Sequence record: NC_041994.1
Reading direction: 5' to 3' (one strand)
DNA length: 64,000 bases
Positions 6,717-35,853 of the stretch are shown piece after piece. Position numbers and translations under genes: made by a program. The notes beneath the pieces were generated by a model. It saw only the letters and a list, made by a program, of their open reading frames with translations, was not told where the DNA came from and ran no database searches. Position 1 is the stretch's first letter; each line of letters begins with the position of its first letter.

Positions 6717-7148
6717 ATGGATCATAAAGCGTACAACCGTAAGCTGGTCGAGCATTTGTTCAACCTGCTCGAAACAGCACAGGGAGATCGCTGGTACATT
6801 CACTACGACCTGAACTTCATGGAAGAGAAGCAAGGGTTGGAACGCTACATGCAGCCCGATGGTGCGTTGGTTCTTAACTTCCATCCGGTGGCTTGCCGTA
6901 ACTTCCACATCGGCGATGAGTTCACCACCTGCAACATGTCGCTGGATGGTTCCAAGCAACACCTGATCCTGCCACACAACTGCATCCGCGGTATCGTGTT
7001 GGAACTGGAGGAAGGTACTGTGCTGGTACCCGCCACACCGATCATGGCAGTAATGATGACCCCACCTGCACCACCGGCGGATCTGATCGACGAGCCGGCT
7101 GTCCCCGAAACCCCGGACAACGTAGTTTCGTTGTTCCCTAAACACTAA
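6717..7148 (+). CDS. sspB: SspB-like ClpXP adaptor homologue
   Basis: DGALVLNFHPVACRNFHIGDEFTTCNMSLDGSKQHLILPHNCIRGI aligns with the SspB core. Pro/acidic linker and NVVSLFPKH tail. Confidence 0.7.
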   Translation: MDHKAYNRKLVEHLFNLLETAQGDRWYIHYDLNFMEEKQGLERYMQPDGALVLNFHPVACRNFHIGDEFTTCNMSLDGSKQHLILPHNCIRGIVLELEEGTVLVPATPIMAVMMTPPAPPADLIDEPAVPETPDNVVSLFPKH

Positions 7149-7165: not shown

Positions 7166-8734
7166 ATGCGTCAGTATCTTGACTTCCTCCGCTACATCCT
7201 CGAAACCGGTGAAGAAAAGGATGACCGTACCGGCGTGGGTACGATCTCCAAGTTCGGCTATCAAATGCGTTTCGACGTATCGGGCTTCAAGGCGCCGTGG
7301 GTAACCACCAAGTTCTCCCACCCGAAGAGCATCGTCAGTGAATTGCTGGACCTGCTGATTGCAGGCACCGACGAGATCGACGGTATGGCCGCCGAGAACG
7401 TGACCATCTGGGACGAGTGGGTTAAAGACAAGACTCGCGTCTACGTCGACCTGAACGTGGCTGAGCGTATGGGTCGCGTCAAGAAAGCTGCGACCCAGGC
7501 GGCGTTCGATGCATTCCGTGACACTCTGTATTCGGCGGAAGAAGTAGAAGGCTGGGAATACATGCCTGCCTCCAACCGCTGGCGTGCCCCGAACGTCGAC
7601 GCAACCCTGCATGCGTGGATTGACGAACATACCAAGGTTCCTCGCCGTAAGCTGGTCAAGGGTAGCCTGGGTCCTGTGTACGGCGTACAGTGGCGTCAAT
7701 GGCCTGTGCTGCGTGAGACCCGTGCGTTGTCCCATCGTTCGGCTGCGCGCTTCGTAGAAGCTGTGGGCAAGCTCGACGAGCTGCGTGCACGCTTCGAAAA
7801 CGAGTTCATGCTGGACGAGTGGCTGATGAAGGCCAAAGCATCCGTATTGCTCGACACCGAAGTACCGGCTGATGCCGTGGTGGCACAGTGGCTGAACGAA
7901 CACGGCTACGTATTGACCGAACAGGTTACTGTGAAGTCGATCGACCAGCTCGCTCGTGCGGTAGAGAAACTGAAGAACGATCCGAACAGCCGCAGCATTA
8001 TGGTGTCGGCGTGGAACCCGGCGGATCTGGCAGACATGGCGTTGGAGCCATGCCACAGCTTCTTCCAGCTGTACAGCAACAACCTCAACAAGCAACAACT
8101 GGTCGGCGTGATCCTGCGCAGCCCATTGCTGCGTGTGGCCAAGCAAGTCCTGCCGCTGGAGTACAACCCAGAAGAAACGTTCGTGCGTTACACCGAGAAC
8201 GTCATGGCACGCAACGAAGACGGTACGCTGCAAACTATTCGCGACAGCAAGTTCGGTCCGCTGCGTGTAGTGGTTGAGCATCAGATCGGCGACGTGGTCA
8301 TGGATCACGAAGGCAAGGCGATGGTCGTCGATACTGACGAAGAAGCTTTGATGCGTCTGGACGTAGCAGAACTGCGTGAATTCGCCGAGAAGTACGAACT
8401 GCCAACCCGTGGTCTGAGCCTGCAAATGTATCAGCGTTCGGCTGACGCATTCCTGGGTGTGCCGTTCAACATCTCCAGCTATTCGTTGCTGACCAAGCTG
8501 CTGGCACAGGTCGTGAACTTCGAACCACTGGAGTTCATCTGGACTGGCGGTGATTGCCACATCTACAAGAACCACATCGAACAAGTCCGTGAGCAGTTGA
8601 CCCGTAAGCCGAAACCTGGCCCGGCGGTGTTCATCAGCAACGACGTGACCGACATCGATCAGTTCAAAGCCAGTGACATCACGCTGGTGGATTACGAGTA
8701 CCACCCGCACATCGCGGGTAAAGTAGCCGTTTGA
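7166..8734 (+). CDS. thyA: thymidylate synthase with three large insertions
   Basis: DRTGVGT, IWDEW, LGPVYG, SAWNP, PCH catalytic Cys, YQRSAD, PFNISSY, GDCHIY. Confidence 0.97.
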   Translation: MRQYLDFLRYILETGEEKDDRTGVGTISKFGYQMRFDVSGFKAPWVTTKFSHPKSIVSELLDLLIAGTDEIDGMAAENVTIWDEWVKDKTRVYVDLNVAERMGRVKKAATQAAFDAFRDTLYSAEEVEGWEYMPASNRWRAPNVDATLHAWIDEHTKVPRRKLVKGSLGPVYGVQWRQWPVLRETRALSHRSAARFVEAVGKLDELRARFENEFMLDEWLMKAKASVLLDTEVPADAVVAQWLNEHGYVLTEQVTVKSIDQLARAVEKLKNDPNSRSIMVSAWNPADLADMALEPCHSFFQLYSNNLNKQQLVGVILRSPLLRVAKQVLPLEYNPEETFVRYTENVMARNEDGTLQTIRDSKFGPLRVVVEHQIGDVVMDHEGKAMVVDTDEEALMRLDVAELREFAEKYELPTRGLSLQMYQRSADAFLGVPFNISSYSLLTKLLAQVVNFEPLEFIWTGGDCHIYKNHIEQVREQLTRKPKPGPAVFISNDVTDIDQFKASDITLVDYEYHPHIAGKVAV

Positions 8735-8739
8735 CGGTA

Positions 8740-8774
8740 AGACGCTAGGGGGTGTCCCCTAGCGTCTATTTTTA
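8740..8774 (+). terminator. rho-independent terminator
   Basis: 12-bp stem AGACGCTAGGGG/CCCCTAGCGTCT followed by attttt. Confidence 0.85.
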
Positions 8775-8789: not shown

Positions 8790-9248
8790 ATGCGCAGTGT
8801 TACCTTTCTTGCTCAGATCGACGCTACGGCGCTCACAACACCCCACTACGTTATCAGCATCAGCGATAAAGAAGACGTTCGGTTTAGTTGTGAACATTTC
8901 GATGTAATGCGCTTGAAGTTTGAGGACATCGAACAGCACTGCGCTGGGCAAGAACTGTTCTCGGTACAGCATGCCCGTGCTGTGTTGAAGTGGGCTAAGC
9001 GAGTGCCCGATGGAGCAGCCGTGGTGGTGCATTGTCAGGCTGGGGTTTCTCGGTCTGCGGCTATTGCAAAGTTCATGAACGACCATCTTGGGTATCTGCT
9101 GTTATTGGACAAACCCTGTTACGGCAAGCTGGACAAATACAACGGGCATGTTTATGGCCTGTTGCGTTTGCTTGACTCTGACCGTAGTGCCTTGGCGATG
9201 ATGCTTGAAGAAGAGCAAGATCGCCAGTCTGTCTTAGTTAAATGGTGA
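8790..9248 (+). CDS. protein tyrosine/dual-specificity phosphatase-fold protein
   Basis: VHCQAGVSRSAA (HCx5R) P-loop. Confidence 0.88.
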   Translation: MRSVTFLAQIDATALTTPHYVISISDKEDVRFSCEHFDVMRLKFEDIEQHCAGQELFSVQHARAVLKWAKRVPDGAAVVVHCQAGVSRSAAIAKFMNDHLGYLLLLDKPCYGKLDKYNGHVYGLLRLLDSDRSALAMMLEEEQDRQSVLVKW

Positions 9249-9252
9249 CGAC

Positions 9253-9573
9253 ATGAATCTTTCTATTCAGTTACCCGACCCTCTGCGTATTGCCAAAGAA
9301 GGTCTGTTAGAAGAAGTCATGGCATCAGCGACCTACAACGCTGACTGGGCCATGGAAAAGATGGAGCTCAGCAATGAGACCCGGGAGCTGGTGCACTATG
9401 CTGCACGCCATGTGGCGGCGGGTGTGCTGGACATCATCGACGGGGGTACTGACCAAGGTCGTTACCTACTGCTACCTATGTCGGTGGTCACGAACCTGAC
9501 TGAGCATACGCCGAATCTGGCGGGTGAGTTGTCAGAAGCACTTCAAGACCTTTATGAGGGGATCAACAATTGA
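9253..9573 (+). CDS. IN-x paralogue family, tandem copy 1
   Basis: LPDP...GVLDIIDG...YLLLP...NLAGEL...YEGINN. Confidence 0.85.
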   Translation: MNLSIQLPDPLRIAKEGLLEEVMASATYNADWAMEKMELSNETRELVHYAARHVAAGVLDIIDGGTDQGRYLLLPMSVVTNLTEHTPNLAGELSEALQDLYEGINN

Positions 9574-9905
9574 ACGCTTTTCGACTGAACATTCCTGATC
9601 CATTGGCCGATGAGCGCCGTGTGTTGGGTAATGCGTTTTCTGACGTTTACAAGTCTGTCATGTACGACATGAACGAACGTTATCCCGGTGAGGACTACGT
9701 CGATGTGGTGCGTGACTGTGTAGAAACCGCCATGACCGAAACACTGCGAGTCTTCGACGGACGTGCCGGGTTCGGTGAAGGTAACAGTACGTACCTGGTC
9801 CTGCCGATGGACATGGTCGAACCACTGCGTGACGATGACGTCCCGACTTTGGCTGGTTCGTTAGCCAGCACACTGCTTCGTGATTTCAGTCGCATCAACA
9901 GCTGA
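9570..9905 (+). CDS. IN-x paralogue family, tandem copy 2
   Basis: TTG start with SD gagggg. IPDP...LRVFDG...YLVLP...TLAGSL...FSRINS. Confidence 0.85.
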   Translation: MNAFRLNIPDPLADERRVLGNAFSDVYKSVMYDMNERYPGEDYVDVVRDCVETAMTETLRVFDGRAGFGEGNSTYLVLPMDMVEPLRDDDVPTLAGSLASTLLRDFSRINS

Positions 9906-9912
9906 GGTGGAT

Positions 9913-10233
9913 ATGCATTTAGAATTGATTCTGCCTGATCCGGTAGAAGAAGCCCGCAAGACGTTCCTTGGCGATATCGTCAACATGCGTGAAGCGGCTA
10001 TTCTTCTGTACGCCACTAACCGTGATGATCCTTTCATCGGTCCTGTAGCCAACGCTGTCAACTACGTCACCGGCCAGTTCTTCGAGTACCTCGATGGTGG
10101 TGAGTTGCACAATGCGGGTTACACCGTGTTGCCGAACCAGATGATCCGTCGGGGCACTGAAGGTGTCCTGCCGAACATCGCAGGGGATCTGCGTAGCACC
10201 TATGATTCCCTGTTCGAGGACATCAACGACTGA
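9913..10233 (+). CDS. IN-x paralogue family, tandem copy 3
   Basis: SD gaggtg. LPDP...FEYLDG...YTVLP...NIAGDL...FEDIND. Confidence 0.85.
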   Translation: MHLELILPDPVEEARKTFLGDIVNMREAAILLYATNRDDPFIGPVANAVNYVTGQFFEYLDGGELHNAGYTVLPNQMIRRGTEGVLPNIAGDLRSTYDSLFEDIND

Positions 10234-10241
10234 GGTGTGTC

Positions 10242-10652
10242 ATGAAAGCCGATAAAGAGTCACCCTTGGGGCAAGCACTCAACCGTGCCGCCACCGAGGC
10301 GCTGGAAGGCCGTCCCGATGTACTACACCAACCACGTGTGGATTTTATCGAGAAGGTCTTAGACGCTCGCGACGACGCCTATGAAGACTTCGCGTGTGTG
10401 ATGCCGCCTGAGTTCCACGAACCAGTCCATAAGGCGATCACATCGGCTGTGGTAAAGACGTTGGGTGTTTTGGACGACGGTTACGTGTTATTGCCAAGTA
10501 TTGACCGCCTGGTAGAATCGGAGGCCGCGTATCTGGTCGTCCCGATCCGACCACACACGGAGGGTCCTCGGGCGATAGACACCAAGACGTTCAATGTCGC
10601 TGGCGATCTGGCAGTGATCTTCTCCACGATCTACGATGACGTCAATAACTGA
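10242..10652 (+). CDS. IN-x paralogue family, tandem copy 4
   Basis: TLGVLDDGYVLLP...NVAGDL...YDDVNN. Confidence 0.85.
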   Translation: MKADKESPLGQALNRAATEALEGRPDVLHQPRVDFIEKVLDARDDAYEDFACVMPPEFHEPVHKAITSAVVKTLGVLDDGYVLLPSIDRLVESEAAYLVVPIRPHTEGPRAIDTKTFNVAGDLAVIFSTIYDDVNN

Positions 10653-10659
10653 GGTGAGT

Positions 10660-10980
10660 ATGGACGTAAAGATCGAAGTTCCAGATCCCATACAGCGGGA
10701 GCGTCAATTCCTCCTGATGCAAATCTGGGACGTCCGTAACGATGTTCTGGATTTGGTCGGTCCAAACTTCGAAGACAACCAGGCAACATTTGTCGTGGAA
10801 GCAATTGACAAAACCATCGATGGGGTGTTGGGAATACTCGACGGTGTGGATCATCAACCCAAAGACTACGTGCTCCTACCGCGCCACTTCTTCAAAGCTG
10901 ACGAACGACTGCCTAACATGAATGGTAACCTCGCCGAAACCTTCGAAAAGATGTTCTTGACCATCAACGAAGACGACTGA
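10660..10980 (+). CDS. IN-x paralogue family, tandem copy 5
   Basis: VPDP...GVLGILDG...YVLLP...NMNGNL...FLTINEDD. Confidence 0.85.
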   Translation: MDVKIEVPDPIQRERQFLLMQIWDVRNDVLDLVGPNFEDNQATFVVEAIDKTIDGVLGILDGVDHQPKDYVLLPRHFFKADERLPNMNGNLAETFEKMFLTINEDD

Positions 10981-11020
10981 CATAGACCTGCCCTACGGGG
11001 CAGGCCCTATGCTTTTTATT
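10981..11020 (+). terminator. CATA-flanked hairpin terminator closing the paralogue array
   Basis: cata-GACCTGCCC-tacg-GGGCAGGCC-c-tatg-cttttt. Confidence 0.8.
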
Positions 11021-11037
11021 TAACTCAAACTGAGGTT

Positions 11038-11045
11038 TATATCAT
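11038..11045 (+). promoter_or_regulatory. putative early promoter variant TATATCAT
   Basis: Preceded by aaactgagg, exactly as at 4039-4047. Confidence 0.6.
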
Positions 11046-11705: not shown

Positions 11706-11933
11706 ATGAACAATGGTATTCAAAGTGCTTTCGAAAACGCCATGGCTGAGTCCCTCGGCTTTGTATCGGTCCAGGCAGTGCTCGATGCTGTCCCGCCAGA
11801 TAAACAGTTGACTGGTAACCCCACCCAACAAGATCGCATTAACCATGCATTCGCCATTGCATTCGGGTTCGACAGCACCCAGGACATGGTGGATGCACAA
11901 GGCATGCGTGGTCGCAAGGGACTGTCAGCATAA
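11706..11933 (+). CDS. hypothetical protein
   Basis: SD aagggg; TAATG coupling to the next gene. Confidence 0.7.
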   Translation: MNNGIQSAFENAMAESLGFVSVQAVLDAVPPDKQLTGNPTQQDRINHAFAIAFGFDSTQDMVDAQGMRGRKGLSA

Positions 11934-12223
11934 TGCTGTCGGTCCGATTAGATGATGAATCGGATTCGTACCTGAGGAAGTTGGCGACGCAGGAAGACCG
12001 CACCGTCAACAACCTCATCAAGCGAATCATCAAGGATTACGCCAGCCGTAATCCACTCGACGCAGATGCGCCTCAAATGCACATGCTTCGAGATTCCAAA
12101 GCACACAAATGGCGTTTGGTCGCCGAGGGTATCGATTTGGGTATTCTCACACTGGATGCTAATGGCGGCTTAGTATTGTCGCTGGACATCAACCAACTCA
12201 AACAGGATAGCCCATGTCCGTAA
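11933..12223 (+). CDS. ribbon-helix-helix (CopG/Arc-like) DNA-binding protein with C-terminal extension
   Basis: LSVRLDDESDSYLRKLATQEDRTVNNLIKRII. Confidence 0.75.
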   Translation: MLSVRLDDESDSYLRKLATQEDRTVNNLIKRIIKDYASRNPLDADAPQMHMLRDSKAHKWRLVAEGIDLGILTLDANGGLVLSLDINQLKQDSPCP

Positions 12224-14577: not shown

Positions 14578-15108
14578 ATGAATATCATCGAGGCGTTTAA
14601 ACGCTGTCCACCGGGCTACTCCATCAAAGACCGTCGTTCCGGTTGGAATGAGTACCACGTTCAATACGGTCGTAATGAAAAGGGTGAGCTGTATTGGACC
14701 GCCGGTATGACGGTGGGTGGGATACTGAACCCTACCGACGTCACCGTAGCGCGCTACAAAGGCGATGACTACGAAGTCTACATGTGGGGTCAACGTGAGC
14801 CTGCAACGATCCTACCGACGTTTGAGCAGGCCTACGCAGAGATTGCCAAGAACTCTGTAGAGACCCATGGCAAGAACCTTGTGGGCAAGATCCACAGTAC
14901 GGTTACTGAGCGCATGAATGCCAGCATCGCCAGTGGCGTCGATCCCGTGGTAGCAAAAGATCTGGTAATGGGGACTACCCGAGACATCTTGGGTATTCTG
15001 GACACGAAGGCTGAGGTCAATCATGTCTATCGGATCGCTCGAAACAAGTACAACGCCCCCAATATGGCGGGTGGGTTGTTGGCCATGTTTGACGAGATAA
15101 ATGGCTGA
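14578..15108 (+). CDS. IN-x family member fused to an unrelated N-terminal domain
   Basis: C-terminus TRDILGILD...YRI...NMAGGLLAMFDEING. Confidence 0.8.
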   Translation: MNIIEAFKRCPPGYSIKDRRSGWNEYHVQYGRNEKGELYWTAGMTVGGILNPTDVTVARYKGDDYEVYMWGQREPATILPTFEQAYAEIAKNSVETHGKNLVGKIHSTVTERMNASIASGVDPVVAKDLVMGTTRDILGILDTKAEVNHVYRIARNKYNAPNMAGGLLAMFDEING

Positions 15109-35203: not shown

Positions 35204-35464
35204 GTGAGATTGGTTAAGTCGTGCCGCCTCCTTAGAAAGAGGCTACTTAACCGTTGGCAATACTGGCGCCTGCTGACTGAGGTTGAAAAAGCAGGCGGTG
35301 CTGTTGTCAACAAGGTAGCCACCTGCACACAGTGTACCCCCGAAACGATGTGCTGCCCGGGTCATCACTGCGAACACTCAACCGCCATGCAACAGTACAC
35401 ATGGCGGTTGCGTTTGCTGGATAACGAATACTGGCGGATTAAATTATCTGGAGCTAACCCATGA
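35204..35464 (+). CDS. small Cys/His-rich protein
   Basis: CTQC...CCPGHHC. Confidence 0.6.
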   Translation: MRLVKSCRLLRKRLLNRWQYWRLLTEVEKAGGAVVNKVATCTQCTPETMCCPGHHCEHSTAMQQYTWRLRLLDNEYWRIKLSGANP

Positions 35465-35853
35465 ACGATGATGATGTTGTAACCATCGACCCCGAATTGG
35501 AAATGGAAGATCGCGAAGAAGAGGATGAGGACGACACGCCCGTGGCGGTCCAACGCATCCAAGACCTTCAGCGTGAGTTCATCCACTCTGTGCAAATGGT
35601 GATGGAACCTTTGGTCGTGGCCAACCCTGAACACCGGGGTTCGATCGAGGCCACAGCCGAAGGCATCCTGCAAGTGATTGAAGGCAACGGCAGCGACGAG
35701 GGCTACGTTCTCGTTAAACGTGACGATGCCAATTTCGCCATGGTCCCTTGCGTGAAGGAAGTCTACGAAGAACACCTGCGTGATTTCGTGGATGCCACCG
35801 GTCTGGACATCTCCGTAGGTCTCACCTCGATGTTCGACGACGTCAATAACTGA
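35461..35853 (+). CDS. IN-x family member with acidic N-terminus
   Basis: GILQVIEG...GYVLV...DISVGLTSMFDDVNN. Confidence 0.8.
   Translation: MNDDDVVTIDPELEMEDREEEDEDDTPVAVQRIQDLQREFIHSVQMVMEPLVVANPEHRGSIEATAEGILQVIEGNGSDEGYVLVKRDDANFAMVPCVKEVYEEHLRDFVDATGLDISVGLTSMFDDVNN

Follow-up and report, generated by a model that had tools for sequence, protein, structure and literature searches.

Why a large bacteriophage should keep five small, strongly diverged genes side by side is the question raised by positions 9253-10980 of a 64 kb stretch of DNA (the window, whose coordinates are used throughout). The window is the final 64 kb of the 278,136 bp record of Pseudomonas phage Noxifer (NC_041994; host P. 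fluorescens SBW25), and the region itself is 100% identical to record positions 223389-225116. Jumbo phages carry a great many small genes that have no annotation, large phages commonly hold tandem arrays of small orphan paralogues, and a tandem array of paralogues is often taken to be an arms-race locus. An earlier note on this DNA had proposed an old duplication followed by diversifying selection, as in host-range or anti-immunity arrays, or else the co-expression of a hetero-oligomer. We found that the array genes are under ordinary purifying selection and are diverging about as fast as their housekeeping neighbours. The reading that we tentatively favour, at a little under even confidence, is that they encode a non-enzymatic protein-binding module, anciently duplicated and restricted to one lineage, in which each paralogue would have a stable partner of its own.

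The five genes and their family

The open reading frame (ORF) table and the RefSeq coding sequences (CDSs) of Noxifer agree on the five tandem genes of 106-136 amino acids (aa) that the note had described; they are gp297-gp293, and all are annotated 'hypothetical protein'. Each gene listed here is present in both sources, and the type letters are explained below.

Positions 9253-9573, + strand: gp297, type A, 106 aa.
Positions 9570-9905, + strand: gp296, type B, 111 aa, with a TTG start.
Positions 9913-10233, + strand: gp295, type C, 106 aa.
Positions 10242-10652, + strand: gp294, type D, 136 aa.
Positions 10660-10980, + strand: gp293, type E, 106 aa; the copy chosen for the structure model.

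The motif [LIV]-P-D-P, which the note had seen at the start of four copies, does lie at residues 7-11 of four of the five proteins. The fourth protein of the array, gp294, has R-P-D-V after an 18-residue N-terminal extension, together with a loop insert that is prone to insertion and deletion across type D. In the long type D forms (133-136 aa) the insert holds a second short hydrophobic Tyr/Pro strand motif, which is absent from the short forms (109-119 aa). With isoelectric points of 4.3-4.6, the five proteins are all acidic. Pairwise identity among them is 22-34% (mostly near 25%), and, because profiles built without one paralogue group still recover the left-out Noxifer copy from 3,283 Noxifer ORFs (E 2e-12 to 4e-25), their standing as true paralogues, with homology beyond chance, is secure.

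All five proteins match PHROG 18616, a profile of 106 positions with no assigned function, from end to end (E 3e-37, 1e-37, 4e-41, 6e-37 and 7e-42), as do the distant metagenomic members of the family. The family was therefore already catalogued, without a function, but the PHROG entry holds neither the fused C-terminal copies, nor the seven types, nor the array architecture, and gp310, one of the fused proteins, is filed under phrog_7880. What the present analysis adds is a map of orthology, evidence that speaks against diversifying selection, and the finding that the domain recurs as a C-terminal module. The five proteins gave no Pfam match above noise and no match in NCBIfam or PADLOC, and a literature search brought up no work on the family, on the expression of Noxifer genes or on DSP phosphatases of jumbo phages, a candidate member of which is encoded beside the array.

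The distribution of the family is narrow. Among 50,697 sequenced phage records it was found in Noxifer only; when 1.84 billion representative proteins were scanned exhaustively with the profile, 17 matched at E <= 1e-3, and a collection of 5.8 billion proteins gave 27 matches, all of them metagenomic (from compost and food, for example). Several of the metagenomic members lie on contigs that share synteny with Noxifer and are 267-284 kb in length. A second, word-indexed search seeded with distant members added almost nothing more, and a search of IMG/VR returned Noxifer and two contigs already in the sample, with no further genomes. One candidate member, P0035 (2,228 aa, matching in 10 stretches), was rejected as a repeat-protein artefact.

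The structure of gp293 was modelled with AlphaFold2 from 39 sequences of the family (predicted local distance difference test, pLDDT, 82.2; predicted template-modelling score, pTM, 0.68); the model, which is fairly confident, has an extended N-terminal segment, two helices (residues 12-36 and 39-61) packed as a hairpin, a loop of ~30 residues and a C-terminal helix (residues 91-100). From this model the domain is predicted to be ~105 aa long and all-helical, with an extended P-D-P N-terminal strand. Across the 39 members the columns D61, P74, G89 and L91 (gp293 numbering throughout) are invariant and P8, D9, Y70 and N103 nearly so, and the protein always ends 1-3 residues past the conserved Asn. 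Sequence profile searches of the PDB with two alignments gave designed helical proteins as the best matches (E 0.16-0.27), and Foldseek comparison of the gp293 model with the PDB found no solved relative (best E 4.1); against BFVD it returned only Noxifer paralogues (one 106-aa protein at a TM score of 0.77).

Selection and remodelling of the array

A profile census of loci, followed by clustering, divided the family into seven paralogue types (A, B, C, D, E, X and Y); members of one type have a mean identity of 0.59-0.93, and members of different types one of 0.22-0.34. Copy number at the syntenic locus, which the note had suggested comparing, proved to be variable, the nine related arrays holding five, four or three copies drawn from the seven types in four layouts (L numbers are our handles for the contigs):

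A-B-C-D-E: Noxifer and L024.
A-B-C-D: L003/L004 and L009/L010.
A-Y-X-D: L002 and L025.
A-D-C: L006-L008 and L011-L014.

Type A stands first in every array and type D occurs in every array; no other type is universal, the presence of B, C, E, X and Y differing between arrays. More distant contigs carry one copy (L021), or clusters and fusions of their own (L020, L028 and L029). The types are orthologous across contigs, and the duplications are therefore older than the Noxifer clade. On this point the note was right, since Noxifer copies that are 22-34% alike each have their own orthologues at 59-93% mean identity. Later change in the arrays has come about through loss, gain and reordering.

In order to assess selection, we compared each gene with its counterpart in the closest relative, L024, using approximate Nei-Gojobori (NG86) ratios of non-synonymous to synonymous substitution (dN/dS). 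The values were 0.09 for gp297, 0 for gp296, 0.02 for gp295, 0.28 for gp294 and 0.09 for gp293; the gp296 proteins are 100% identical in amino-acid sequence despite a proportion of synonymous differences (pS) of 0.09. Flanking genes compared in the same way gave ratios of 0.01-0.34, and the array values fall within this range. Amino-acid identity to the distant relatives is 52-71% for type A and 43-67% for type D, compared with 56-59% for thymidylate synthase and 62-66% for gp292, both neighbours of the array. In helix 1 the identity is 0.40-0.75 within types against 0.16 between types and, because the helix is conserved within types and divergent between them, each paralogue keeps its own surface.

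Only one part of the array, within gp294, departs from its surroundings, and it lies in the indel-prone insert of type D. Over a tract of 200 nt (~10450-10650), Noxifer and L024 share 49-69% nucleotide identity, whereas the two genomes are 95-99% identical elsewhere, and the tract differs in length by 9 nt. Because its synonymous divergence is very high (dS 1.16) and its dN/dS (omega) only 0.3, we take it to be an allele imported by recombination rather than a product of positive selection. The diversifying selection suggested in the note thus finds no support, either in the ratios of 0-0.28, in the neighbour-like divergence or in the gp294 tract. The array is a clean counter-example to the arms-race assumption: it is old, each copy is conserved, and its remodelling has proceeded by loss, reordering and allele exchange and not through rapid change of sequence.

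Junctions, fused copies and genomic setting

The junctions between the array genes, and the hairpins at either end, bear on how the genes may be expressed together. The relevant features are as follows (dG, folding free energy).

Positions 8740-8767, + strand: upstream hairpin and T-run; 12-bp perfect stem, dG -24.3 kcal/mol, z -5.55.
Positions 8790-9248, + strand: gp298, a DSP-like (Cys-based) phosphatase; DSPc match E 9.3e-07, 29.2 bits; phrog_5614.
Positions 9903-9909, + strand: TGAGGTG junction gp296/gp295, the gp296 stop lying within the gp295 ribosome-binding site.
Positions 10231-10237, + strand: TGAGGTG junction gp295/gp294, the gp295 stop lying within the gp294 ribosome-binding site.
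Positions 10650-10656, + strand: TGAGGTG junction gp294/gp293, the gp294 stop lying within the gp293 ribosome-binding site.
Positions 10981-11011, + strand: closing hairpin, then a T-run; dG -20.1 kcal/mol, z -4.75; none of 200 shuffles as stable.

The note had recognized both the reuse of the stop codon within the ribosome-binding site at the three TGAGGTG junctions and the single hairpin that closes the array, and both observations hold. In each TGAGGTG the TGA is the stop codon, and GAGGTG lies 3-4 nt 5' of the next ATG; at the remaining junction, gp297/gp296, the TTG start of gp296 and the TGA stop of gp297 overlap as TTGA. TGAGGTG was rejected as a special signal, as it is not enriched in the window (11 occurrences against 10.9 expected). 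The three sites are instead part of a 26-nt junction repeat, with copies 65-81% alike, which spans the conserved last codons, the stop and the ribosome-binding site, and the triple use of TGAGGTG is explained by inheritance of this junction with the ancestral duplicated unit. The design is kept in eight related arrays, either as the last codons, TGA, GGTG and an ATG 3-5 nt further on, or as a stop/start overlap.

The upstream hairpin stands directly 3' of the thymidylate synthase gene and ~22 nt before the start of gp298, whose own stop is 4 nt ahead of the gp297 start. Both hairpins are present in all relatives with compensatory stem changes, which in the closing hairpin include a change from G-C to A-T. 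With a stable G+C-rich stem, a T-run and compensatory changes, both have the features of intrinsic terminators and may be called terminator-like. The genes gp298-gp293 thus form one six-gene unit, of which gp298 is the first, bracketed by the two hairpins; in arrays that lack gp298 the first hairpin leads straight into the array. Since the stops lie inside the next ribosome-binding site or overlap the next start, the junctions of this unit would favour coupled translation. Beyond the closing hairpin, the sequence TTTATATCA lies at 11036-11044, ~50 nt 5' of the gp292 start, and recurs at the same position in L002, L003, L006, L010, L011 and L025, while in L012 its last base differs. It was rejected as a recurrent promoter motif, because it occurs once in the 64-kb window, and may be a locus-specific regulatory element.

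The domain is not confined to the array. A census of the whole Noxifer genome converged on seven members, namely the five tandem genes and the C-terminal ends of gp310 and gp285; these two, and a further doubtful candidate, are listed here with their hidden Markov model (HMM) E values.

Positions 1-576, + strand: 3' part of the gene for gp310 (233 aa), whose start lies 126 nt outside the window; the domain is the last ~80 residues, window ~334-573; HMM E 1e-5, then 2e-17 after one iteration.
Positions 14578-15108, + strand: gp285 (176 aa); the domain is C-terminal residues ~112-176; HMM E 7e-4, then 4e-10 after one iteration.
Positions 35461-35853, + strand: doubtful distant member, 130 aa; HMM E 0.01, with a similar C-terminal ending; not recruited on iteration.

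The gp310 copy aligns with the family, sharing its invariant columns and the same C-terminal ending, and the fusion is kept in 12 of the 12 orthologues found; in these the C-terminal ~20 residues are almost invariant and the preceding helices variable. The N-terminal domain of gp310, phrog_7880, is unrelated to the array domain. It stands alone, unannotated, in KVP40-like T4-type Vibrio phages, and is also found in Aeromonas phages; it has been exchanged between unrelated large phages. In a model of a gp310 orthologue, built from an alignment of orthologues (pLDDT 71), the N-terminal domain is alpha/beta and the C-terminal module helical, and the model gave no fold match in the PDB. The only match to the N-terminal part of gp285 is an unannotated 80-aa protein from a replication module of an Alcaligenes phage, where its gene lies between those for DnaB and DNA polymerase A. 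In the distant contigs the domain likewise forms the C-terminal end of proteins of 199-217, at least 421, 506 and 292 aa (P0033, P0037 and P0038 are among the fused forms), and in L020 and L029 two fusion genes are found two genes 5' of a DSP-like phosphatase. What emerges is an orphan domain that occurs by itself and also closes larger proteins, within a narrow chimallivirus clade.

Noxifer encodes a PhuZ tubulin, a nuclear-shell protein and multisubunit RNA polymerases and, as it is also named among the chimalliviruses (2026 preprint), it is a nucleus-forming jumbo phage. On the 5' side of the array, and on the same strand, are genes for a dCTP deaminase, a DHH phosphoesterase and a 522-aa thymidylate synthase (Pfam match E 1.5e-89), followed by gp298; on the 3' side are gp292 (phrog_3921) and, farther along, an RNase H. 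The DSPc score of gp298, 29.2 bits, is below the curated cut-off of 33.5. An orthologue of gp298 is kept in some relatives, and the arrays of L002, L011-L014 and L025 have no phosphatase gene. Genes for thymidylate synthase and for DSP, DHH and HD-like proteins recur beside family members, in the distant contigs as well. The base composition of the array was in no way atypical.

Several observations concern the neighbouring genes themselves. The thymidylate synthase (window 7166-8734) is 522 aa long in Noxifer and L024 and 467-474 aa in the other relatives, and the Pfam match of the Noxifer enzyme falls in two stretches, suggesting an internal insertion of ~50 aa. In L009 (1943-4483) the thymidylate synthase gene is broken once by an insertion with an ORF for a GIY-YIG/NUMOD3/I-TevI-type homing endonuclease, which calls to mind the td intron of T4; in the near-identical L010 the gene is intact. 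Just 5' of the thymidylate synthase gene, gp300 (window 6717-7148) gave no Pfam match at E < 0.01, while its orthologues in L002, L025, L003 and L006 match PF04386 (SspB, a ClpXP adaptor). On the other side of the array, the small protein gp290 (window 11933-12223) matches a ribbon-helix-helix (CopG) model at a borderline level (E 0.0027; 18.1 bits, cut-off 20.5), and a gene of ~350 aa a few kb 3' of the arrays of L003 (10620-11663) and L004 (10601-11662) has a weak match to PF26125 (AcrVA2-like). An SNF2-type helicase gene in L021 (2723-5854) contains a LAGLIDADG domain and probably an intein.

What the domain may do

The case for a protein-binding module is built on the lack of a catalytic signature, on shared columns that look structural, on helix surfaces conserved in a type-specific manner and on the pattern of fusions. 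Each paralogue would have an evolutionarily stable partner, either encoded by the phage or a conserved protein of the host, which might plausibly come from the nucleotide- and DNA-metabolism neighbourhood that the array genes always occupy. Where the module is fused to another domain, it would carry that domain to a partner of this kind, and the arrays would then have been remodelled by loss, gain, reordering and allele exchange. Several points weigh against this reading. The near-invariant polar residues (two Asp, one Tyr and two Asn) could form a small-ligand or metal site, and the synteny with nucleotide-metabolism genes may reflect shared ancestry only. In addition, dS is saturated in every comparison except that with L024 and, with only 2-9 sequences per type for site-wise analysis, positive selection at single sites is compatible with the data. 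The promoter search of the unit gave none, and sigma-70-like matches were below expectation; chimalliviruses rely on their own polymerases.

The coupled junctions kept across relatives would also suit an explanation that we consider rather unlikely, in which the shared domain is one of homo- or heterotypic assembly and the paralogues, with gp310 and gp285, join in one mixed complex whose proportions are set by the coupling. The columns conserved in all members could form a common interface; the N-terminal and loop strands of the gp293 model are unpaired and of lower confidence, as if they paired between subunits; and the module genes cluster in distant lineages as well. However, the layouts vary between A-B-C-D-E, A-B-C-D, A-Y-X-D and A-D-C, and some distant contigs apparently have a single copy; with composition so variable, no fixed five-part complex can be required. 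As for the hetero-oligomer of the note, there are coupling signals at every junction, but an obligate five-part complex is unlikely when types B, C, E, X and Y are present in some arrays and missing from others. It is also unlikely, though compatible with the evidence, that the domain is a hitherto undescribed docking or assembly module, peculiar to one clade of nucleus-forming jumbo phages, which would recruit the five paralogues and several unrelated larger proteins (gp310, gp285 and the fusions of 199-506 aa in distant contigs) to one phage structure or complex through its conserved scaffold and strictly C-terminal ending; this common structure would possibly be linked to the DSP-like phosphatase and the recurring nucleotide-metabolism genes.

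A counter-defence or host-takeover array, with each paralogue inhibiting a different host factor and copy number tracking the hosts met, would be in keeping with small, acidic, helical proteins, with a copy number and composition as variable as those of accessory genes, with the allele swap in gp294 and with the weak AcrVA2-like match a few kb 3' of the array in L003 and L004. We nevertheless judge it unlikely, given dN/dS values of 0-0.28, a divergence equal to that of housekeeping neighbours, the presence of types A and D throughout the clade and the fusion of the domain to larger proteins. Nor did the five proteins resemble any defence-related or solved protein found; no likeness to a counter-defence protein appeared in the PDB, BFVD or PADLOC, none of which is a dedicated anti-defence library. 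The signs of an anti-immunity or host-range array to which the note had pointed are thus divided, variable copy number and composition being present and elevated dN/dS or faster divergence absent. Very improbable, finally, is that these are internal proteins packaged in the virion, as in T4, with the shared terminal motif as the packaging signal. Four of the five copies do have a short N-terminal segment in common, and the C-terminal ending is strictly conserved, but the genes lie amid those of nucleotide metabolism and a long way from the head genes, their products are acidic, the N-terminal motif is missing from gp294 and from the fused forms, and no annotation or homology ties the five proteins to virion proteins. 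A binding module with stable, paralogue-specific partners remains the reading that we tentatively favour. The orphan domain offers a concrete small target for structural and proteomic work, the practical value of which is modest unless a partner is found.

Three known kinds of system invite comparison. The immunity arrays of polymorphic toxins likewise consist of tandem paralogues of ~100 aa in which scaffold residues are conserved and surfaces vary, but the Noxifer array sits in a lytic jumbo-phage genome. No adjacent cognate toxin gene was found: the match of gp298 to PF22785, a toxin-system phosphatase model, was far below threshold (E 0.053, 14.5 bits, cut-off 27), and the phosphatase gene is missing from several arrays. 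Anti-CRISPR and other anti-defence clusters share with the array their small acidic orphan proteins, accessory copy number and clustering. Such clusters are usually made up of unrelated families with quick turnover, whereas the Noxifer array is one family under purifying selection, with universal types A and D and with fused versions.

The internal proteins IPI-IPIII of T4 are an example of small diverged paralogue arrays in large phages, and the likeness to the Noxifer genes lies in the neighbouring positions of small, strongly diverged genes, in a short shared terminal motif and in an expression that would be joint. There is, however, no similarity of sequence or fold; the Noxifer proteins are acidic and are encoded in a nucleotide-metabolism cluster, and what their copies share most strictly is the C-terminal ending rather than a cleavable N-terminal leader.

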